Source of the DNA: Bugula neritina
Taxonomy: Eukaryota > Animalia > Bryozoa
DNA length: 64,000 nt
Direction: 5' to 3'
Assembly (NCBI GenBank): GCA_964035545.1
Contig: OZ037768.1
Location: 17,343,875-17,407,874 of the forward strand
Shown here one piece after another: positions 1 through 62,908 of this stretch. The notes beneath the pieces are model-generated. The model made no database searches and was not told the DNA's origin. It saw nothing but the letters and a program-made list of their open reading frames with translations. Both the position numbers and the translations under genes were made by a program. Position 1 is the first letter of the stretch; each line of letters opens with the position of its first letter.

Positions 1-7264
<7,264 letters not shown>

Positions 7265-41600: not shown

Positions 41601-44020
41601 AATCTCTAAAGAGGCAACAACTCCGCAAAAACATCGGCCATAAGCCACCATCTTGAAAAAATAAATCTTCTTAGTTACCAAACTTCGATAGCAATTTTAG
41701 AGGTGAAGGAGATAACAAGGTACTGCAAAACCTACTTTTTTGGAATCCTTGCATTTTTTTGTACTAGAAAAGTTAGTTTTCTAAAATAAGCTTTTTAACT
41801 TTGAATTTGACAAAATGAAATTCATCATTCAATTACGGTCTTATACAAATGCCGCCAAGTTCCTGGTTTTGTCGTGGGGAGTCACAAATGGTCAGATCAA
41901 AATTTTCAAGTAAGCATGATTAGATTACAACTATGACTATCATTTATGTACATGTATACCATGATATACACTCCGATGTTTCATTTTGGGTAAAAATGAT
42001 TGTTACATCTTGATCACAATTTTGATTTTTATTTTACACAGGTTAGCTTTAAATGATGTGTTGAATGGTGATGTTAATAATTCTTTGTAAAAACTATGTA
42101 ATTATTTTTATTGTGAAACTACTAAAGGCTAATACTTTGATACCATATGAAGTGTTCCGTTTGTGAAATATGTTCAAGAAGTTTCCCAAGTTTATCTAAA
42201 ATTCTTTCAATTTCATCAAGTTATTTGTGTTAATTGCTGATGGTCTGTTTAGGTGAGAATTTGTAGTGTACAACTTTGAGCTTTTACTAATTTGTTGCTT
42301 TTATTTATTCTTTTTCTTTTGGAGAGCAGAGGTAGTTAAAGCAGTGCTACTGACATTTTAAAACAAAATTCACTTGAAAAACCTAATTCTTTTAATCCTA
42401 ACAAGTTTTTTTTAGGATTATTGGTGGAGTGATATTTTGGTTAGTTATTTAGAAAACAAAATATTTTTGTGGGTTCTCAGGGTTTTTTCTCAATAGTTGA
42501 CTTTGAAATAAGTAATTAATATTGTTGGAGTTGTGACCCATACAATCTGTGAAACTATAAAATCTGATGAAGCTTTGTATTATTTTACAGCTATATCAGA
42601 TGGTGAAGTGGAGCCAAATCATGCTATTCTCAGAGAGTGTAACAGTATATGTCATCGTCTTCCAATATTGAATACAAAATCATTTCAAGAGCAATTTTTC
42701 AATGTATGTGTTACTCTATATAGTATAATATATTACCATAGACCTACATTGATTTGCTTACTCCTTTATTTATTAACTTTGATTGTTTAGCACATTAGAA
42801 CTTTTAGTTTCTAAAAATAATATTTTGTAGAGCAATTCTCTTTTAAAATTTGCTCTGTGTATACAGTGACATGTTTATACACTGTACACCTGACCATTTT
42901 TATGAACTGTAGCCAGTAATGCTGTGTTATAGTAGCATCATTTTCATATTCTCACCTCAGTGGTGACCTTTAGCAGTTTTGATGCTTATTTATTCTGTTC
43001 AATGTAGTATTTTCTTATTGCAGCAATGCAATGATGTGGAACTTATGGCATATCTAGGAATAATTACACAGGGATGTCAAGTTATGAACCAAGTATGTAT
43101 TCTTTTTCAAAATTCTTTTAACCTTTTAGCATAAAAATACATGGATGGATTTTTAATACCACCTGTTTCGATTTTGTAATAAGATTTTGCTGGAAAATGA
43201 TAGCTCCAACACCTCAAAGTTTTTTGAAAACATTTTTGCACTTTTCTCTTCGATAAATTTATTATCTCAGGTTTCTGAATTTGCTTCATTGTAAAAAATT
43301 AATGAAACAGAAAGTTAATGAGATTGAATGGAACTTTGTTCGACTTTCAAAAAATTTAAATCTGTTTCAATTAAGCAGGGTTAATTTGTGGATTTGGGTA
43401 GTTTTTTCTTCAGTTTTATTGCTAAAATGTTTGTTTTGGCTAGAAACTACTTTTTTATAAGTTCAGTATTTTGTAGCGATAACTCGATAATTAGCAAATT
43501 TAATGTGCTGTTTTGATTTATGGACTTATTGACAAAAGAATTATAGGCGAAATATTATATTAGTCAATGAATTGACTGTTTTTTTATAAATCAGCTATCA
43601 GACATTTGAGCTGTTGTTGTATCTCTTGCAAAGAATTGTTACTTGAAAAAGGCAAAATAAAAATCTTTAGATATTAGTGAAGGCGACTGTTACAGAATTT
43701 AATTTAGAAGAATAAGTAGTAAATTTGTATGCTGCAAATTTACAACCCTCAATGTTTCAAAGGCACTTAGTTTGTGAGGCAACCTACAAATTGTGTTTTT
43801 GTTTTAAATATTTTGTTGTTAACATTCCGTCTTATCACACTAATATTGATTGTCAGTACCCTCGTTATTTGTTCTACTCCAAACTGTGAAATTAAGCTAT
43901 TGCTTGTTAATGCTTTATTAAAATGTTTTGTAGTTTGTGTCCAAGTTCAATGTGCTGTATGACAGAGTGGGACCTGGGGGAGGGCGCCGAGGCCGAAGTC
44001 TTGCTTTTGTTGGTCTCTAG
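38692..44020 (+). CDS. COPS6: COP9 signalosome subunit 6 (MPN- domain), ~8 coding exons
   Basis: HPLVLLNISEHWTR (exon 38692-38872), GAVIGKQTGRLVELLNSYEL (~39619-39750), KQVFPDFDMLGWYSTG (~39964-40040), AERIGVDHVAR (~40753), HAILRECNSICHRLP (~42591-42703), QCNDVELMAYLG (~43024-43092) and FVSKFNVLYDR...* (43934-44020). Confidence 0.95.
41247..41885. mobile_element. Non-autonomous TIR transposon with 4-bp AAAT TSD (Sola1-like) in COPS6 intron
   Basis: aaat|gtgacccgccatcacaaaaccaggaac ... gttcctggttttgtcgtggggagtcac|aaat. Confidence 0.78.
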
Positions 44021-45699
44021 GTTATGTCTACATGTAAATTGATACAAATTTATTGCAAAGTATGTTTCTGGTTGTTGTCAATATTTTCTAATTTATGTGG
44101 TTTCAGTTTTTAAGCATTTCGAAAATATTAGCAAACCAATAAATTTTGCGTTTTTCAGACTTCAGAGTAAAAATTCTTCTAAATAAGTCTCACCAGTCAC
44201 GAAATACTAGGAAAATAGATTTTATAAAAAATATGTCCAACTTTTCTGTTTATTGTAAATTTCTTAAATTCCTAAGCAATTTATATTTGTTGGTTACATT
44301 GATTATGTATGCTCTTGAAAGTTAATGTTTTCGGGCATATTATAAGTTTGTATTAATACAAAGTTATAGTTTTGTATAGTTGCATTGTTCTTGGTTTTTT
44401 AATAAATTATCACACTAATATTCTTATTGACTCAATTAATCCTTTTGCAGTGCAATGCTGTGTGCAAATAGGGATAAAAATTAATTTGCTATGTAATTAG
44501 TTTCTGTTTTGGCTTCAAATGCACAAGTTATCAGGATCAGTAAGCATTAAGAGTTTTCTGTGTACATCGCATTATACTATTATAAAAAGCAACAAACTCC
44601 AGTGCAAAATGTTAACAAATTGCAGAGTCACATCTAAAACTAGTTGTTGGTGCTTATATAACTAATTTTTTGTTGCCACACAGTTTCTTATCATTGTGTT
44701 GTGCATGTAATTGTATAATAGTCAAATAGTTTCAATGAAGCGTATGAAAAACTACTCATACTATGTCAGCCCTAGAACTCGCCCTGTTAAATTTTGCTAC
44801 AAGTTACCATGATGGGAGCTGAAATGTTGCACAACATTGAAATTTAGTTTGGTAATATTTTATCTGGGCATTTTTACTTTACTTTACTACTGTTGTCAAT
44901 TGCAAATAAGGCATATAATTTATTAGATCTCCAAACATATGAGCGTTAATAATTCAGGGTTTCAATCATCTTTAAGCATTTTCAAGCATATTATATGAAT
45001 GCAAATATTATATTTATAGGACTTGGAATTTTAAAAAATATGTAAGCTCATATACTGCAAATAGTATTTATAATTTCTAAATAAAAGCAGCTAGAGTCAT
45101 CATAAAATAAAATAACACGAGATATATTTTTAGCAGTCAATACTGAGTTTGCATGAAGTTTCTCTATTGAAATCTGCATGGACAGAAGAACTTCATGGTT
45201 ATTATAAGTGCTGGAATATATTATGTATAGCATTTATACTCCAATTTATACTCCAATAATATACACAATTAATATGTTTATGTTGTAGCCTGCATAGTAA
45301 ATGGTCCAGCCTTTAATCTGAATCTCTCATCTATTTAGTATGATTATAGAAACATAATTATTTTGCTATGTGTGTTAATATGAATGTAGTACCTTAAGGA
45401 AACTTGAATACGACCTTGAATAAGACCTTACGCTTAAAGTTTGTGAACGAGAGTTATCTTTTCCTGGAAAACCCCATGGTTTCCAATAGAAACTGTCACA
45501 TTGATTGCTTATGCTTCACGCAATCTACCGCCAGTCTAAATGCGACTTTACCAAATTTTACCAATGACTATAGTGTTCAACGTTATTGTATGGCCTCGCA
45601 CTAGCCCTGTATATGAGAATCACAATGACTTCATTCTTTTTTAAATATGTTTTCTTCACCATTTGATAAATTAGCATTCTAACTGATATTATAATAACA

Positions 45700-47080
45700 A
45701 AACAAATAGCGTTACTGATGGTGATTAAATTTAGTGATTTACAATACTCAATCATACTGATAATTATAATGATTATGATAATCTTTATCTTATACTTAAG
45801 TTATAATAATAATTATATCATTATGATTATCAATACTTCTATTTATACTTATAGTTATACTGATAGACCGTAAAACTAATAGACGATGGTGATAGTCAAA
45901 CTCAATGTCATAGTGATAGTATCACTATCAGTATCTGCATAACTATTACTATAACATTAACTGATACTCTTAGTCATACTGATAGTCAGTATGAGATGCT
46001 ATTGGTAATCTAAATCATAGTCATAGTGAAACTGATGCTTATAGTTAATATTAATCAGTTAATGTTATACTTATAGTTATAGTGGTAGTAATAGTCGTAC
46101 TGATGGCGATAGTGATACTCATACTCATAGTCATACCGATCCTGCAACTACAAGTACTAGTAGTCAAGTACAACTCGTAAGTCTATAGACTATAAGTATA
46201 AGTATTGGTATTACTATTACTATTACTAATAGTGTTAGTATTACTATTAGTATTACTATTACTAATAGTAATACTATTAGTATTACTACTAATACTAATA
46301 GTAATACTCAGTGAATGAGAATCAGAATGATTGTCATGTTATGATGCTCATAATCTATAAGTATATGGGTATTACTATTACTATTAGGTATTACTTATTT
46401 CCTATAAGTATAACTATAACTATAAGTAATACTAATAGTATATTAGCGCAGTCAGTATGTGTATGGATATTAAAATGATTCATCAAATTTAATATACTTA
46501 TTCATTTATTGTAAAACTAAAATAAATATGATACTCATACTCATAGTCACACTGTTAAAAATTAAATTAACAACAAAATTTAATAAAATTATTTAAATTA
46601 TTATTTTTTAATTTTATGTTATTAATATTCAATTATATTTACATTAAATTTGATAATCTAAATGAAAAAGTCTGGCATAGACTAACCTAAGGCTGCTACT
46701 CGAAGTGGAGAATCTAAATCACAACATAAATCATAAATGTAATAATAATCATAGTGAATTTCAATGTAGTACTAATAGTAAATTCACTTTATAGCAATAC
46801 TTATACTAAAGAATTGTACTGACAATGAACGTGAAGTCGACAGAACACGGCACCGCCAAGGTCCAAAGCCAATCCTGATACATGCCAATCTTGCACATAG
46901 TCTAAGGCTTATACTCATATTATTAGTTATACTGATCTTAAGTTACTGTGAGTATGACTAACAGTTATGACAAAACACAAACTGAAAATTAAATTCCAAA
47001 CTCCTAAAGGGAAAGTGAAGATCAGAATTATATCACCATCAGTCTCGCAATCAATCGTGACACTGACACCTTGATTTCAC
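45700..47080. repeat. 5+1 periodic field upstream of the zinc-finger gene
   Basis: ttata-c-ttata-g-ttata-c (45843-45860), tataa-g-tataa-c-tataa-c-tataa-g (46403-46426) and tatta-c-tatta-c runs at ~46209-46300. Confidence 0.85.
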
Positions 47081-53958: not shown

Positions 53959-56900
53959 TCAATCTGCTTTGGTCACTGGCCATTTCCAGAGTACTATCTG
54001 CTTCCCAATTTGATTATTTTCATCTAGCACAGGCGAACGTTGATAGCTTCTCAGAAACTTCCACATACACCAAATATTAATCCAGAAGAAAAGAAGTGAA
54101 GCAGTCCACACTAGGCCCAGTATGTCATAGTGATGATATTCATAATAGTAAGCCGGCAAAAACCACACGCCCTAAAACGGTTAACAAAAAAACCAGTTTA
54201 CTTGACCAAAATATTAAATCCCATATGACAAAAAATCTATCAACAACCTCTCTTCACTTTAAAATGACAAACGAATGTATAACAATTGCAAAGCAAATTT
54301 GAAATGACTAGGATAAATAAATTCTTATTACGATTCGTATTTTACTCAAGTAAACTTACGGTAAAAGTAAAAACTAAATATTACATATGCAGTATATTAT
54401 CCAGCTCACCTGTGCTGCAAGCCATAATACAAACATAAGAGATGCTTCTTTGATGGACAGTTTAAGACTTGGCAGTATCAGTGGAAGTAAGCATAAGTAC
54501 CATAGAAAATACTACAAAATATTTAGCAACATATATTATTTGTCTGTGCATATACAAATATTCTGCCTCTGACAGATGAAAGCCAACTGGTAGTAAATGT
54601 TTTAAGTAAAATATACATGCATAGAAAAGCATATTAGTTAGCCTTGAAACTTTCCGAGCTAAATCAGTGAGTAGCATACAGTCAGACATTGTTCACTACA
54701 AATACCTCATATTTCACACCCACTGCTGGTAGAAGTTTTCCAGCATATTATTGCAATAGGAACTTTGAACTTATTCAAAATGCATAAAATTAAACAAAAT
54801 CGTAGAGCATTTAGCTCAGTTGATGAACACTATTGTATACCATACCTGAGAGGTGCACACTTTGTTGAACGTGACAAACGCTAGTGTAATGATGAACCAG
54901 CAGAAAGGAAGATCTCTGTAATATTTGTATGTGAAGGTGAGGGTAGCGCCTAGCTGTGGAAGGAAGGCAGACAGCCCGATAATAGAAGAAAATATTGGCG
55001 CAAGCTGTTCCGAGATTCTCAAGGGATAAAAGTATATAGAAAAATTATGTTGAATGTCTTTCCTCGTAATGTGATACAGGTACGTTTCATCCAAGAAGAT
55101 CTGTCCATACCTGCAACCCACAATGCCAAGATAATTCTGTGATGCATATAATTGCCTTACTTTTCACAAATAAAATAAAATTTGTAGTTCTATCATTTTA
55201 GCTTCACGTTATAATATTATGGAGAAAAAAAGGGTTTGAATCCTTATAGCGTCAATCTGCTTTGCAGCGTAAAATAAGTTGTGATCTGCTACACTTGTTG
55301 GATGAAAAATAATTGCCCCCAATAGGAATCAAACCCGAGTCCTCTGGCTTGCAAGCATGTGTGCTACCATTACACTACGGGAGCCACTGGGTAAACTCAT
55401 CACTACATTGGACAACTGTAGGTTCGCCTTTTTAGGGGGGTAGAAGGAGTCAAACCTCCTCCCTAACTAAATTATGTAAATCATATCTACGTGTGCATGG
55501 CAACAAATCAATGTGGCCAACAACCCACAGCAAAAAATTAATCTTTACATCTGAAAAATGCGAGTGGTTCAGCTAATTTCATGATCTGGAGTTCGGGGTT
55601 CACTCTAAACTTCCCAACTCCAGACGCTAAATTGCAAAATGCGTTCAACCAAATGCATTCTTAGAACAGAACTATAATTTTTCTTCCATAAAAATGTGGT
55701 TTTACTATTATAGCAGCTACTTACATAATGTAAAACATGAAGCACAGTCCAATGGTAACGAATGCGCCAATAGCAGCAAAGATCATAGAGATGTCACTCG
55801 GCCATAACAATGTCAAAACATATTGTAATTTAGTTTTAGCTTTCGTTCTATATGATAGTCCATACTGTTCATTCATCAGCAAATATATAGATGGAGCATA
55901 AACTATGGGGTAGGTTTTAGTATGTACTGCTAAAGCAAAGAGCAAAGCTGCTAGTACATTTTGCTTCTTTAAAATCAAATACAGAGTTCCAACAACCATA
56001 CACGCCAAAACAGATTCTGCGTTGCCTACAAATATACAGGTATTCACTGAGTTCACATTTTAATTTACAATAATTTTGAAGTATTCATCATTCTAAAACG
56101 AAACTAGCTTCATACAAATTGCACTGCTTAATATTTTAGTAAAAATATTTTGTCATTAAAGTGAAACTGAAAACCTATGCCATACCTACATACAATTCTT
56201 GCAGTTGATTTATTTTTTAACAACAGTTAAAAATTACAAGCTCATACAAACAATTCATGAACTCGTTTTTTAAATAAAAAATCAAGTATTATAATATATA
56301 CATTGCAAAACTATTCTAGTACATAGTTTACCATACCTCTTGTTGACACAACCAGTGGTAAGGGGTTAAAGACCCATGCAGCAGTACAAATGCTTCCAAC
56401 AGCATGGCTCACACCTCTCAACTCCAAAATTTTGAATAACAAGAAGCCATGAAGTATATCTAGTAGGCTAAACAGCAACTTTCCAAAGCACGGGTGTATA
56501 AATACATTGGGTACTAGTAAGTAGGCAATAAGTGGTGTGTAACGGAATGTTTCCCTTTCGTAAGGTGAGCCACCCTAAAAATATAGGAGTGCACATACTA
56601 GTGAAAAGAATTTTATAGTATTTTAATCACATACACTTCACAATACGCAATAAGATTTTTAACCATTTTATTAGAATTTAGATTAAAGTTGTCCCCCACA
56701 GCATTTATGACCACCAGAATTGAAGGTTAACTTTCATTGTAGCACTACAACCAGTTGCATAGTCAGCAAAAAGTACGGTTGCTGCCTTGCAATAAAATTC
56801 CACCAAGTCAACTCAGGTCAATGGCTAATCAGGTCAAATCAAATTATGGTTCAAACAGAAAATTTCAAGTGAAGTCTTGGTCAAGCCAATCAATGTAAAA

Positions 56901-59900
56901 AAAATTCACAAAGAATATCAAAAATACTTAATAAAACTCAAAATGGTAAATAGCTACACAAACGTGGAAGTTTAAACAAAATGTAGCTTCAGTTAAGCCA
57001 TATTCAATCAATAACAATAGAATTTTAAATAACTTCTGTAATAATGGCTACAAGTTACTAAATTTCTGCACCCTATATAACTTTTTAACGGCACCGAAAT
57101 TGCTACAACTTTCATGATAAAGCTATGAAATAAAGATAATGGGATCAATCTATCTGAATGCTTGCTATAAGTTTAAGTCCTCAAAACTAAACTATCACTT
57201 AACTTTTGAACATTCAAGATCTATTGTTTGATATCTCTACTATATATTATAGTACTGAAAATAGATAAAACTCTAATAGAGCAAAACAATAATAAATATT
57301 GCAACATTGCCATAAATTTTTATGCCTTTTATCATGTATTTAATAAAATATTTTCTCCTAGCTATTTTTATTATTTACTTTTGTGGGTTAAGTATAAAAA
57401 ATATTTTTTTCATTCAAAGTTAATTCATTCATTCATCTCTTTTATAAGAAAGTATAGCAACACAACAAAAACTATAAACAACGTAACTTAAATGGTAGCA
57501 TAAAAAGAACCTAATACTAAAATATATATGTTTATCAGATACTAACTTAAATATTGTTGTTTTCCTGATATTGGCTTCACACTAATCCAAAGAAAATTTA
57601 TCGTAGGAGTTAATAAATTAAAATATGATCTTCCTAGCCAGAATCAGAATAGCTAAATTCTTAGGAGTAATAATGTAATAAGTTGTGGATTTTTGAATGT
57701 AATCAGGCAGAGAACATAACTCCTTGCAAGTGATAAGAGAGTTCTTGTAGAGTGTGCTAAGTAAGCTTTCTTGGTAAGAGTAGTTTCTTCCAGTGTGAGC
57801 TCCTGTCTTCAACTGCCTGGGAGCTCAAAATGGGCCTTCTTTTATACTAGTCAAACAAAAGGAGTCTAGAACCTTCGACCTACAATAGGCCAAATTTCGG
57901 AATGACAGGTTTTGGTGTGCCGACATTCGGAATGTCGGTTGGTTGACAAGCCGAACTTCGGTCGAGATCGATTTACATTGAGTAAGCAAAAATGAAACAA
58001 AGTTAAGGGGGCTAAGTATCGCTATTTAACATGAATAATTATAAGAATGTGTATTGAGAGAGATAACTCTATAAAATACCACAATACTACTAGAAAATTT
58101 GAAATTAGATTCACATATTAAAAAGTTTCATTTAATATTTCCAACAAAGGTACAATTTTACCATATAAAACTCTAGAAATATTTTTTACTTAAAGATGCT
58201 GCTGATACATGAGATCCATGTATTAACACGTTAAAAACTAAATTAAGTATTAGACATAGTTTGTTTTACTAAAAATCTAAAGGGTAGAAATTTTCAGTAA
58301 CTGGTGCTAAAATTAAGACTCTTATAGAATCCTTGCACAAATATAGAAAATTTAGTACGAATGTTATGTTGCACCATGACCACTCTAAACCAATCATGAT
58401 ATTTCTTAAATCCGTGTGAATTTTTACATACAGCAGTTACACTAATTTGAACTTTGTCAATGCTAGATCGTGCAACTTCAGCTTATACCTAAAAAAACTT
58501 AAGCCTTTTGCTTCCCACTGTTTAAGGGAGGCTCTGGGTTTCTGAATCTAGGTAAGAGAATGGTAGTTTAAAGCCTAGTCAATTTAAAAAATATGATATT
58601 ACTCTTTCCAAAACATTAAGAGACTGATAAAGAGCACCTGGTTTTGCCCCTTGCAGTTTCCATAAGTTGGCTCTTGCAGAATGAGGTTGGGTTTTTAAGG
58701 CTCTCTGTCATCCAGCACTCAACTTTAATAGTTTTACTGTAAGCATTGTGGCACAGCTTTTGCAGCCTTTGTTTATGCTGGCTTATAACTACCCTCATCT
58801 ACAAGTCTAGAAGGGTGAAAAGCCTAGAACATATGGATCATCAATGTCTGTTGGATATTTCTATAAACCAACATCAGTTTAAACAAAGTTGGAAAACTAA
58901 TTACAAACACTTGGTAAAAATTACTGATCCAGGACTTCTACGATCTCGAAAGAGGGGCAAGCGTGGCGGAGTTAGAGTAACTCGAAGTAATAAAACTGGC
59001 AAAGTGCCTCTACCTGCAGTTTTTCTCCCTAATGCACAAGCCGTAAAAATGCTCAGTGAATGGGCTCATTAGGACCAACTAACTCAACAACCAATCTCAG
59101 CTCATTTGCATAACCAAATTCTGGCTTACTCCAGAAGTGCTCCATTTAAGAACCGAGCTTGAAGGTTCTGAACAGTTCTGAAGGGACAGACTCCTAGATG
59201 CTAGCGGTAAAACCTGTGAAGGTGGCATTTTGGTCTATATTAAGAGCAAATGGTTAACAAATAATAGCATTATATTTAACTATACGGCAATTACTGTGAA
59301 ATTCTGACAATTGAATCAATACCTTACTGGCCCCCAAGAAAGTTTACCTCAATTATCTCTGTTTCATGTTATACTCTTTTCGCCGGCGCTTCCAGACTAA
59401 AACAAAATGTTTCATCCACAGGTATCAACACTTGTCAAAGAACTAGAGAAAAAAACACCCAGATTCATGCATTTTTGTGATTGTGGATTTTATTCAGCTT
59501 CCTTTTAAACTTGATGAATAATATCAGTCAAGACACCTACACAGAACAATAAAAGTCTTGATAAGTGCTAAATCCTTTATCTTGAACAGAATTACTGGTG
59601 AGCTCTATGCACCGTGAGCTGGCTCAATCAGGTCCCGGTCAAGAAGGTCTTGCACTTGCTGGCTCACCTTCTCCGGGCCCAGTCATCGAGTAGGCTGCCT
59701 GATAAAGATGGTGCCGGCTACTGGGGGTATTTCGTAACAGACGACGTCGGTCAGCCCTATGTTGTCGTTTCCACATCTGAATACATCACCGTATTCCAAG
59801 AGCAGTTGAGCCAGCTCTTGGCGCCACGAAATATTCCTACAGCTTCCACAAGCTCCTTCGTACAGTTCAGTCACATACTCCGGAATGGCTCCTTGTCTGG

Positions 59901-62077
59901 TCTGAGGGCCCTGAGTTACAGTGCCGGTCCGACATCTCCTTTTTGGATAGAGTGGCACTTCCCCACCAATGCACTAGCCTGCAGCTTGAAGGACTTCTTG
60001 AATGGGTTGATGCATTGCACGAGGAGCTCTCCCCAGACAGTCTAGCTGATTCAGGCTGTTTGCCAGTTGGATCCTACTGTGCATCTTCTCCACCACTCCC
60101 AGCTTCGCAATCCTCCTGCAGTTGTCCCTGCAGCGTAGGGTGACTTTGGACCGCTCTGGTGCCGTAAAGTCCTGTACTACCTAGATTCCGCCCACCAAAG
60201 GCCTGCCAAACTTGCTAATACAGACAAGTTCTTTTCCAGCCATAACTACCGCCGACCTCTGGAAGTCCATGCAACACTGGTGTTTCTCCAGGTGGCTGAC
60301 AATGAAAGTCTTGTGAATCACTTGATCATGGACTCTTCCAGGTAGTGTGATGATGACGTAGATAGGAATGCATGATCTGTCCAACAACGTACCATACGTA
60401 CCTTCGTATGGCTCGAGGCCCGCCCGCTCTTGAGTACCAAGAATGTCGAAGAGACGCCGACTCAGCAGGCCCGTAGTACACCCAGTGTATAGTAGGAAAT
60501 TGGCAGCTTTACCCACAATCTTCCTGGGTAGGAAGTAGCTGCTTCCATACGACTGGGTGCTCCTGGTCAGTCTCTGAGGGAGATACTTCTTGGGTCCAGA
60601 ACATACCGTGATAATAACTGCCAAAATCTCCTACGCTATATATTAAATCAATCAATCAAGTCTTAGTATGCATAATGATGATCCCAAAATGCTAGCTGAT
60701 TCTCATGGCAAAACACCAGTAAATTTTCAGATCTGGTAGACACATAGTTGTTGTTTGGAATCCCGAAGCCCCTGTAGCGCAATTGGTTAGCGCACCTGTT
60801 TGCAAGCCGGAGGTCTGTGGTTCGAATCCCGGTGGGAGCAATTATTTTACAAGTTATTTTGACCTTGTCTGGTGGAAGTACTCTCAGGGAGTTGAGTAGC
60901 GAGTGGAGCCCATAAACTGACAGAGTATGTGGGGGCCAGTGCAGTTCTGGAGAGAACTGGGTGGGATGTTGCTTGGAATCTCAAAGCCCCTGTAGCGTAA
61001 TTGGTTAGCGCGCCTGCTTGCAAGCCGGAGGTCTGTAGTTCAAATCCCGGTGGAGGCAATTATTTTACAATAGGCTTAACTGTATTAGAACTTAGATTCA
61101 TAGGGATAGCCAACATCAAGCTCAACACCAATTTGAAACACCCATTGGTCCTTAATATTAACCACTACTATTACAATTAGTATTGCAATCAAGTAACTCC
61201 AATCAAAATTAATCACTTTTTGACATTTTGGCTTTTGAAATTAGTGTTTACTATTCATTACAGCTCTCACTATCACTATGATCATACTGATAATGCTGCA
61301 ATAGTAGGCCTAATACTAATTATTTCTAATAGTATTCTACTAGCCTATAATTTATTATCAATAAGAATATCATCAAAATGATAATAATTATAACTATTAT
61401 TATTTGATGATGATTCCCTTGCAATCAAATGAAAACGTTAATAATTATCTAGTTAAACCTACAAATAAAAATTTAGTGAATGTATAGCTACTAGTATTAC
61501 TATAAGTATAGGTATATGAAGAAATTGAAATTGACTCTTTATAAGTTATTATTTTAAGCCTAAGGGTAAGTTAAAGTGTTAAAGTATAACTATGACATAA
61601 TGATTAACTTAAAGTTTATCATAATGTTTTACTTATAGTTATACTAATAGTAATAGTAATAGTCATACTTCAACTTGCACTTCTGTCATCAAGACTCAAG
61701 TATAGTCATCTACTTCTAGTAATTGACTTTTATGTAATTAAAGTGCAAATAACGATAAGCTCTAGCTACTTGCACTTCTGTCATCAAGACTCAAGTATGC
61801 TGTATAGTCATCTTGATCTAGTAATTGACTTTTAGTTTTATGTAATTAAACTTAAAGTAAAAGTGCAAATAACGATAAGCTCTAGTTAGTAAAATAAAAA
61901 CTCTCTGATGTTAAAGCTTACTTTATATACATGTGCTGCAGCATCGGAAAATACTGAATAATCGATGTCTGTGTATTGAAGATCGAATGCTTTATCTTGC
62001 CATTCTCCATAACCTATCAATAGGAGCCGTAGTAGTACGCCACCAAAAAGTATGGCCCATAAACTGCCAAAAGGCAT
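53959..62077 (-). CDS. PIGM: GPI mannosyltransferase 1 (PIG-M), ~6 coding exons
   Basis: Exon 1 (62077-61922) has the YTDIDYSVFSDAA DXD motif. Exon 2 (~56574-56338) reads SPYERETFRYTPL...FNPLPLVVSTR and exon 3 GNAESV...HTKTYPIVY. Exon 4 has YLYHITRKDIQHNFSIYFY...FVTFNKVCTSQ, exon 5 YF..YLCLLP, and exon 6 WFLPAYYYEY...*. Confidence 0.93.
55309..55384 (-). mobile_element. tRNA-like SINE head (family C)
   Basis: The minus strand reads gctcccgtagtgtaatggtagcacacatgcttgcaagccagaggactcgggtttgattcc...gggggcaattatt. It is related to the 60768 and 60986 units. Confidence 0.6.
58770..59575 (+). pseudogene. Decayed LINE 5'/APE endonuclease fragment in PIGM intron 1
   Basis: LRSRKRGKRGGVR...PLPAVFLPNAQ leader, followed by frameshifted APE motifs (ICITKFWL; RDR..SGK..GGILVYI). 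Confidence 0.65.
59580..60624 (-). pseudogene. Ty3/Gypsy LTR-retrotransposon pol fragment (aspartic protease to RT N-terminus)
   Basis: FLLYTGCTTGLLS is a mutated D-T-G protease motif. ELAQLLLEYGDVF...IGLTDVVCYEIP...IRQP is the pre-RT region. The fragment is markedly GC-richer than its flanks. Confidence 0.75.
60768..60840 (+). pseudogene. tRNA-like unit (TGC anticodon-like), SINE head / pseudo-tRNA, copy 1
   Basis: A box tagcgcaattgg and B box ggttcgaatcc are present, but the acceptor, anticodon and T stems are mismatched. Confidence 0.6.
60986..61058 (+). pseudogene. tRNA-like unit, copy 2 (218 bp downstream)
   Basis: Near-identical to copy 1, including the flanks ttggaatc..aag and attattttacaa. 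Confidence 0.6.
61673..61885. repeat. Tandem duplication (93 vs 118 bp) within a 5+1 periodic field in PIGM intron 1
   Basis: Copy 1 is 61673-61765 and copy 2 is 61768-61885. They differ by +7, +6, +6 and +6 nt indels. Confidence 0.9.
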
Positions 62078-62753
62078 TGTGTTGTTTTTAAAATAAATTA
62101 TTAATAAGACTAAAACATATACACGCTGTAAATAATAAATATTTTAGCGGGCAATACTACATTCATCGATTGGATTCCGTAAAAATACTTTAATATTAAT
62201 AATTAATTTATAATTATACAGATATTATAAATACAGATTTAAAAGTTGGGGGAATGGGAAGTTTGAACGTAGCCTTACCCGCACAGTGAATTTGTAACTT
62301 GCCGTCTTTTGGACCCCTCACCAAGCTTTTTACTGTAGAGGTTTGCTATATTGAGAAAACTTTCAGCTGAAGTTTAAAGTGAGAGGCTAACTCCAACAAT
62401 TCAAAATTATTATTTGTTTTTTCATTCAGATAGTTGTTGTAAATTGCGCATGTTGTGATAAATTATGGGTTTTGTAAAAACTCAACTAGAGAACATAACC
62501 CATTGTTAGCAAAAGAAAGAAGGCAATTATAGGTATAAGATGTCTTTATTGGCATGCTCCCAAGAACAGTATAATAACCTGTATATAGGTAGCTCCAGCA
62601 GCAGACTGAATCTAAGCTGGCGAGCTCGCCCTTTCAAATTCTAAGCTCCAGAGTCTAGAATATTTCATCAAAATCCGGCCGATTGCCCAAATTTAGTCAC
62701 ATAAGATTTTTTAAAAGAAAATAGGTATATACGTATTACTTTCACAATCTGAA

Positions 62754-62818
<65 letters not shown>

Positions 62819-62853
62819 TATATATATATATTGCGAAGGTGTGGGCCATGGTA

Positions 62854-62908
62854 CTCTGTTCTGTGCTGATGAGGGGACAAATCCCGAAACAGCTGCTGTC
62901 CACAGATT

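Follow-up and report, generated by a model that had tools for sequence, protein, structure and literature searches.

Six-nucleotide differences in a tandem duplication of PIGM intron 1 in Bugula neritina and their probable origin as insertion scars

How do two adjacent copies of one short sequence come to differ by steps of six nucleotides, and which of the two has kept the older form? This question is raised by a tandem duplication in a region of 64,000 nt of AT-rich eukaryotic DNA (G000:C4:17343875-17407874), which lies within a 216-Mb assembly. We call the whole of this region the window, and the positions given below are positions in it. A first-pass annotation of the sequence had described the duplication, and had proposed that scar fields beside the first exon of a gene grow by discrete events of 6 nt with a non-templated middle base.

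The tandem duplication and the gene beside it

The duplication was confirmed in the assembly sequence, although the ends previously given to its copies (61765 and 61885) each fell 2 nt short. Copy 1 (61673-61767) has a length of 95 nt, which corresponds to an 89-nt ancestral unit with one event of +6. Copy 2 (61768-61887) has a length of 120 nt, which corresponds to the same unit with one event of +7, four events of +6, and one change of C to T. When the copies are compared directly, they differ by +7, +6, and +12. The duplicated unit is unique across the 216-Mb assembly, and the junction of the duplication has a microhomology of 1 nt.

The three 6-nt differences that the first-pass annotation had reported were located exactly as stated, and its 7-nt indel was found at 61794-61806 (AGTAT-gct-GTATA). 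Two further differences had been missed. One is a block of three bases, ACT at 61713-61715 against TGA at 61815-61817, in which all three bases are complementary. The other is a single C/T difference between 61766 and 61886.

The tandem duplication is located 35-249 nt inside the first intron of PIGM. Exon 1 of this gene occupies 62077-61922 on the minus strand and contains 52 codons, and the donor GT of intron 1 is at 61921-61920. We used exon 1 alone as the query, without joining the exons, and it matched the solved GPI mannosyltransferase 1 chains with an E value of 3.9e-6, residues 9-49 being aligned to residues 9-49. Exons of the Pfam domain PF05007 (Mannosyl_trans) are present at about 54816-56026, also on the minus strand and about 6 kb downstream of exon 1. 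The N-terminal match and the downstream domain on the same strand together confirm the predicted identity of the gene as PIGM.

A copy-and-complement rule for the insertion events

One rule fits five of the six length changes that are specific to one copy. That is, a 6-bp target X1..X6 is replaced by X1..X5, then X6 or its complement, then X1 or its complement, and then X2..X6. Since the rule duplicates the 6-bp target with the end bases either kept or complemented, the gain is constant at +6. When one of the two joint bases is complemented (a single flip), the product is a 5+1 pattern; when both are complemented (a double flip), it is a 4+2 pattern; and when neither is, a perfect 6-mer repeat results.

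Copy 1 bears one event, a double flip at 61708-61719 (ATCTA-ct-TCTAG), in which both inner bases of the target ATCTAG are complemented. Copy 2 bears a double flip at 61809-61820 (CATCT-tg-ATCTA), and its target CATCTA is only 1 nt off the target in copy 1. Three single flips are also specific to copy 2, namely 61829-61840 (CTTTTA-gTTTTA), 61846-61857 (TTAAAc-TTAAAG), and 61853-61864 (TAAAGT-aAAAGT), the last of which overlaps the event at 61846-61857. The remaining copy-2 event is the irregular +7 at 61794-61806, which is lacking in copy 1. One of its joint bases, t, complements the first A of the target, and the bases gc are left over. The only ordinary substitution between the copies is at 61886.

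The rule also accounts for the three-base block that had been missed. The block of ACT and TGA consists of an independent +6 insertion in either copy, the two targets being 1 nt apart. Both copies can be derived from an ancestor containing ...GTCATCTAGTAATTG..., which is shorter by 6 nt. Since each copy gained 6 nt at one place, the alignment became gapless there and mimics three complementary substitutions. We rebuilt both copies from the 89-nt ancestor with a script. Copy 1 was reproduced exactly after one operation, and copy 2 was reproduced exactly after four +6 operations, the irregular +7, and one change of C to T. The whole reconstruction thus comprises the irregular +7, the single change of C to T, and five +6 operations that follow the rule. 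That is, six copy-specific length changes stand against one ordinary substitution since the duplication, in 178 nt compared.

We then considered whether the middle base is templated. Among the five regular events, 7 of the 10 joint bases are complemented, and none of the five new units is an exact copy of its neighbour. In the two double flips, all four joint bases are complements of the end bases of the target. The three 5+1 events are each flanked by one C/G and one A/T base, so that any middle base would be equal either to a neighbour or to its complement; such mixed flanks are uninformative on templating, either way. Further informative cases are found in the window as a whole. Where the two flanks of a 5+1 pattern are the same, the middle base was their complement in 54 of 92 cases, against an expectation of one third (p 5e-7). 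Where the flanks are mixed, the complemented flank was C/G in 31 cases and A/T in 33, which indicates that flipping is independent of base identity. Exact 4-nt matches at an offset of 6 numbered 317 against 199 expected, and both joints were complementary in 80 of the 317 (25%), as compared with 13-17% at control offsets (p 5e-5). The idea of a non-templated middle base is therefore not supported, and the informative cases point to templating.

Perfect, single-flip, and double-flip patterns were in excess in a ratio of about 75:118:47, a figure from rough arithmetic in which the longer matches include ordinary hexamer repeats. This ratio is close to what would be given by independent flipping of either end with a probability of about 0.44. 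Two results count against the rule. We estimate that about one third of the same-flank 5+1 patterns that are not due to chance lack the complement, and two +7 events fit the rule only partially. The proposal that all 5-mers obey TnnnA or AnnnT describes only a tendency, with which 108 of 177 five-mers comply.

These 177 five-mers are the exact 5-nt matches at an offset of 6 in the window, against 59 in shuffles that preserve dinucleotides, while other offsets gave only 1.1-1.7 times the expectation. The offset-6 pattern exceeds chance. Five fields totalling about 6 kb hold 97 of the matches, and the density is 16 per kb in the fields, 1.4 per kb outside them, and 0.92 per kb in the shuffles. 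One of these fields (61300-61900) covers the first 600 nt or so of PIGM intron 1. The probability of three events within 35 nt is about 5e-6 at the shuffled density and 0.02 at the field density, in agreement with the high local density already noted beside exon 1. A self-BLAST of the window gave no further before-and-after pairs. An array with a 13-nt period at 5000-5440 (…atgcTATATaTATATgcta…) adds several counts to the 5+1 patterns; we do not regard it as a scar field, and it is instead an ordinary tandem repeat adjoining (TA)n.

These results bear on slippage of a hexanucleotide followed by point mutation, which we regard as very unlikely. Slippage could draw on the fact that perfect 6-mer repeats are likewise in excess, and on one perfect ATCATA repeat that is a +6 change in the outgroup described below. 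But the five regular events are changed solely at their joints, and 7 of 7 changed bases complement a neighbouring base, while the remaining unit has one substitution in 89 nt. In addition, the excess peaks for 5-nt matches at offset 6, and complemented joints are enriched.

Three other schemes were rejected. A 7-bp target with an overlap of 1 nt yields 5+1 patterns and never 4+2 patterns, and offset 7 shows no enrichment of double flips (13 of 99). A P-nucleotide model of the Transib/RAG type needs a middle base complementary to the end of the 5-mer itself, which was not observed. The 8-bp footprints of hAT elements predict a gain of 6 only for unflipped joints.

The same intron in a related lineage

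The duplicated unit is single-copy, and there is no outgroup copy of it within the same genome. An exact look-up of the exon-1 ORF gave no match. A homology search with this 63-aa ORF found a 75-aa ORF with 94% identity, which is encoded on six independent contigs (L067-L072) from samples labelled Bugula neritina. Two of the contigs are from JGI 3300003318 and 3300002729, and four are from SRR4020080, -82, -83, and -84; none of the contigs resembled human DNA. The names of the JGI records contain AY690838, under which the mitochondrial genome of B. neritina is deposited. The longest of these loci is colinear with 58014-62769 of the window, with about 8% substitutions. We infer that the outgroup probably belongs to the B. 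neritina complex as a sister lineage.

In all six contigs the unit is single and the tandem duplication is absent. All six also have the short form at the three +6 single-flip sites and at the +7 site, the same as copy 1, and carry GTCATCTAG uninterrupted where the double flip of copy 1 is placed, and C at the site of 61886. Since the outgroup is short at all four sites, the long forms of copy 2 are derived. These short forms, taken together with the uninterrupted GTCATCTAG, indicate that six of six copy-specific length changes are insertions. In the same manner, the C of the outgroup, which is shared by copy 1 at 61766, indicates that the T at 61886 is derived. The uninterrupted GTCATCTAG ancestor had been deduced from the double-flip rule before the outgroup came to light.

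The first-pass annotation had suggested that polarity be checked with the orthologous intron, and had named an ancestral long form as the finding that would speak against it. The sister lineage contradicts such an ancestral long form, and with its single unit, short at four sites, it supports growth by discrete insertions. It is hardly credible, in our judgment, that copy 1 was instead shortened by microhomology-mediated deletions. Every long form does hold short direct repeats that such deletions could use, but the short forms are common to the outgroup and copy 1, so that the same deletion would have had to happen two times over at each of four sites. Besides, the double-flip inserts are unlike between the copies, and both of them are missing from the outgroup. 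Slippage and microhomology-mediated deletion resemble the present case in their short direct repeats and in the 6-nt period, but neither predicts complemented joints, and the outgroup indicates insertions. The differences between the copies are thus best explained as insertion scars, rather than as deletions or products of slippage.

The comparison also gives an order to the events. Another double-flip scar, TACTT-ca-ACTTG at 61666-61677, abuts the left edge of copy 1. Because it is common to the outgroup, it predates both the split of the lineages and the duplication; it was ruled out as a seventh event after the duplication on the same ground. A 7-nt difference, TCAAG-ac-TCAAG, occurs at 61689-61700 and again at 61784-61795, that is, in both copies, and is absent from the outgroup. 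This difference accordingly predates the tandem duplication. The copies themselves differ by one substitution across 89 ancestral positions, which indicates that the duplication is much younger than the split of the lineages.

The outgroup has changes of its own. Adjoining the ATCTAG site, it carries an extra 12 nt, which include the 5+1 pattern TGGCA-g-TGGCAC. A few bases at this site were thus struck in three independent lineages or copies, which marks the site as a hotspot. An outgroup-specific change of +5, in which AGTAG became AGTA-ct-GTAG (L067 at about 3420-3445; window at about 61490-61510), has both joints complemented, so that steps of anything from 5 to 7 nt may occur in this process. 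Indels of 5-17 nt between the window and the outgroup cluster at 61085-61767. The listed indels of at least 4 nt in the promoter, the deeper intron, and a retroelement fragment were not scar-like. In the lattice at about 61600-61665, a length difference of 15 nt from the outgroup could not be decoded.

With six events and a single substitution in 178 nt, the locus is much richer in events than the fields are on average. Such a density points to a burst or a hotspot, which a transposon model alone does not predict. One alternative is a single error-prone repair event that produced both the duplication and most of the small insertions. Synthesis with template switching, as in end joining by polymerase theta or in microhomology-mediated break-induced replication, would then have left an inaccurate new copy. 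Copy 2 holds five of the six events, four of them packed into 61809-61864, and the single substitution between the copies and the 1-nt microhomology at the junction are also in keeping with one event. Nevertheless, we consider this alternative improbable. Copy 1 bears its own event at the same hotspot, and the same types of scar occur singly throughout the window and at the same spot in the outgroup. Moreover, repair with templated insertions copies nearby sequence and does not predict the exact complementing of joint bases.

The agent of the insertions

Excision by hAT transposons keeps the target duplication and turns the joint bases into complements of the bases next to the element, through hairpins on the flanking DNA, their opening at the tip or beside it, and subsequent end joining (PMC5873905), and excision of TcBuster behaves similarly (PMC3499496). 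Groups of hAT elements with target duplications of 5, 6, and 7 bp exist (PMC12730594). We think it reasonably probable that the scars are stacked excision footprints of a hAT-like transposon with 6-bp target duplications. The descriptive rule and the polarity are much firmer than this reading, in which the agent itself is deduced from its traces.

In this proposed process, a cut-and-paste transposon similar to hAT6 would insert and make a 6-bp target duplication. The element would then excise, with hairpins being formed on the flanking DNA in the hAT fashion. A hairpin opened at its tip would restore the end base, whereas a hairpin opened one base off would replace the end base by its complement, and the opened ends would then be joined. 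A 6-bp target combined with opening close to the tip would always give +6, with the two ends flipping independently and with a field period of 6 bp. Successive rounds of insertion and excision close to the promoter, perhaps of one element that hops locally, would stack such scars into a 6-bp-periodic field.

Two of the expected traces were observed. The target duplication is retained, since the target of each of the five +6 events occurs only once in the outgroup and in the copy that lacks the event. The joints are complemented, as seen in 4 of 4 double-flip joints, in the 54 of 92, and in the 80 of 317; the single flips are uninformative in this respect. A donor with a 6-bp target duplication was not found in a shallow search of about 0.1% of the genome. 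Our confidence in a transposon is limited by the lack of a 6-bp element, by the two irregular +7 events, and by the burst-like density.

We compared the scars with known systems. The footprints of Ac/Ds, Tam3, hobo/Hermes, and TcBuster agree with the present scars in the kept target duplication and the complemented joint bases. They differ in that the step here is 6 bp and not 8 bp, that the outcomes here are unusually uniform and nearly always +6, and that the scars here are stacked by dozens in promoter-proximal introns with the donor not found. As to the hAT5, hAT6, and hAT7 groups, the +5 double flip of the outgroup would suit a relative with a 5-bp duplication, whereas the bounded hAT elements of this genome all have 8-bp duplications. 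In V(D)J joining, opening of a hairpin away from its tip places complementary bases, called P-nucleotides, at the repaired joint. P-nucleotides extend an end palindromically, whereas the end base is replaced here, and V(D)J joining makes no target duplication. Chemistry of the Hermes type, with a nick in one strand 1 nt inside the flank, would replace the end base.

Matches to the hAT dimerisation domain led to three families whose ends could be bounded, all with 8-bp target duplications. The first is a young family of 3.05 kb with a 563-aa ORF and three copies (L044:2372-5422, L045:2335-5385, and L046:2422-5472), which are 99.8-99.97% identical. Its ends are CAGGGTTGGGG...CCCCAACCCTG, and its target duplications are ACCTACAC, GTATCTAG, and CTTACTAC. 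Judged by eye, the L046 copy is inserted in ACT/AGT lattice DNA. The second family has two copies at 99.8% (L047:3091-5662 and L048:3028-5599), and the third is represented by L066:4011-6257. Of these two further families, one has the 8-bp duplications ACCTAGGA and GTTTAAAC, and the other has GTGGTATG, with ends TAGGCCTGCACG. This genome has recently active hAT elements, and their young copies count in favour of a transposon.

A scan for terminal inverted repeats and target duplications over 245 kb gave no convincing 6-bp donor, and its output was dominated by palindromes and by the pseudo-palindromic lattice. Two candidates within the window were rejected as donors. The candidate at 42927-46045 has no ORF. 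The candidate at 62450-62643, upstream of PIGM, is an old dispersed repeat of about 190 bp with undefined ends, of which there are at least 13 copies with 69-79% identity.

Two intact hAT-like ORFs of 492 and 470 aa were also found (G000:C3:4214841-4215047 and G000:C3:17496141-17496299; L049 and L050). Both are single-copy, terminal repeats and target duplications were not detected for them, and they are candidates for domesticated transposases. They are of concern for another possibility, in which a host enzyme writes the scars without any mobile element, for example a domesticated hAT-type transposase acting on open DNA near promoters. Apart from these two ORFs, the search among the three bounded families and the 245 kb, which gave no 6-bp-duplicating element, is in favour of a host enzyme, as is the restriction of the scars to the start of intron 1. 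On the other hand, no target is duplicated unless something is inserted into it by staggered strand transfer, and a 6-bp duplication is not known to us as the outcome of hairpin-forming cleavage at one site. We therefore consider a host enzyme rather unlikely.

If the reading of stacked transposon footprints holds, the locus is a natural time series, in which the duplicate and the outgroup give the direction, the order of magnitude, and the junction chemistry of the mutation process by which the first introns of many Bugula neritina genes are shaped. DNA of 6-bp period at gene starts that looks like "low-complexity" sequence can then be the scars of breakage and repair, rather than a code or a microsatellite, and such scars can locally build up faster than point substitutions. 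Which enzyme cuts at promoters becomes a testable question, and the rule predicts each new allele. This locus contributes the direction of change, read from the outgroup, and a case in which what the rule predicted was later confirmed. It also gives evidence of recurrent hits at a hotspot, and of insertions that locally outpace point substitution. In a limited keyword search of the literature, work on the footprint chemistry came up, but none that describes 6-bp scars stacked at promoters. We also speculate, with considerable doubt, that gene starts might be continually rewritten by 6-bp copy-and-complement insertion that locally outruns point mutation, perhaps through a hairpin-forming transposase retained by the host, and that promoter-proximal introns might be built de novo in this manner.

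Other differences from the outgroup concern neighbouring elements. A tRNA-derived, SINE-like element of 322 bp with two tRNA-like halves lies at 60749-61070, and it has hundreds of candidate copies in the genome. It is missing from the outgroup, which indicates that it was inserted in the lineage of the window. A long, imperfect target duplication of the kind left by retroposition seems to flank it. No +6 flip events were seen in 29 copies of this element, the one at 60749-61070 included, and these copies serve only as a negative control outside the fields. A stretch of 388 nt at 58452-58839 is also missing from the outgroup, and its ends are not clean. Finally, a mini-element of about 80 nt between (TA)n tracts (window 62829-62904; L067:2044-2119) has the opposite orientation in the outgroup relative to the colinear flanks, as would be explained by an inversion across palindromic (TA)n or by an independent insertion.
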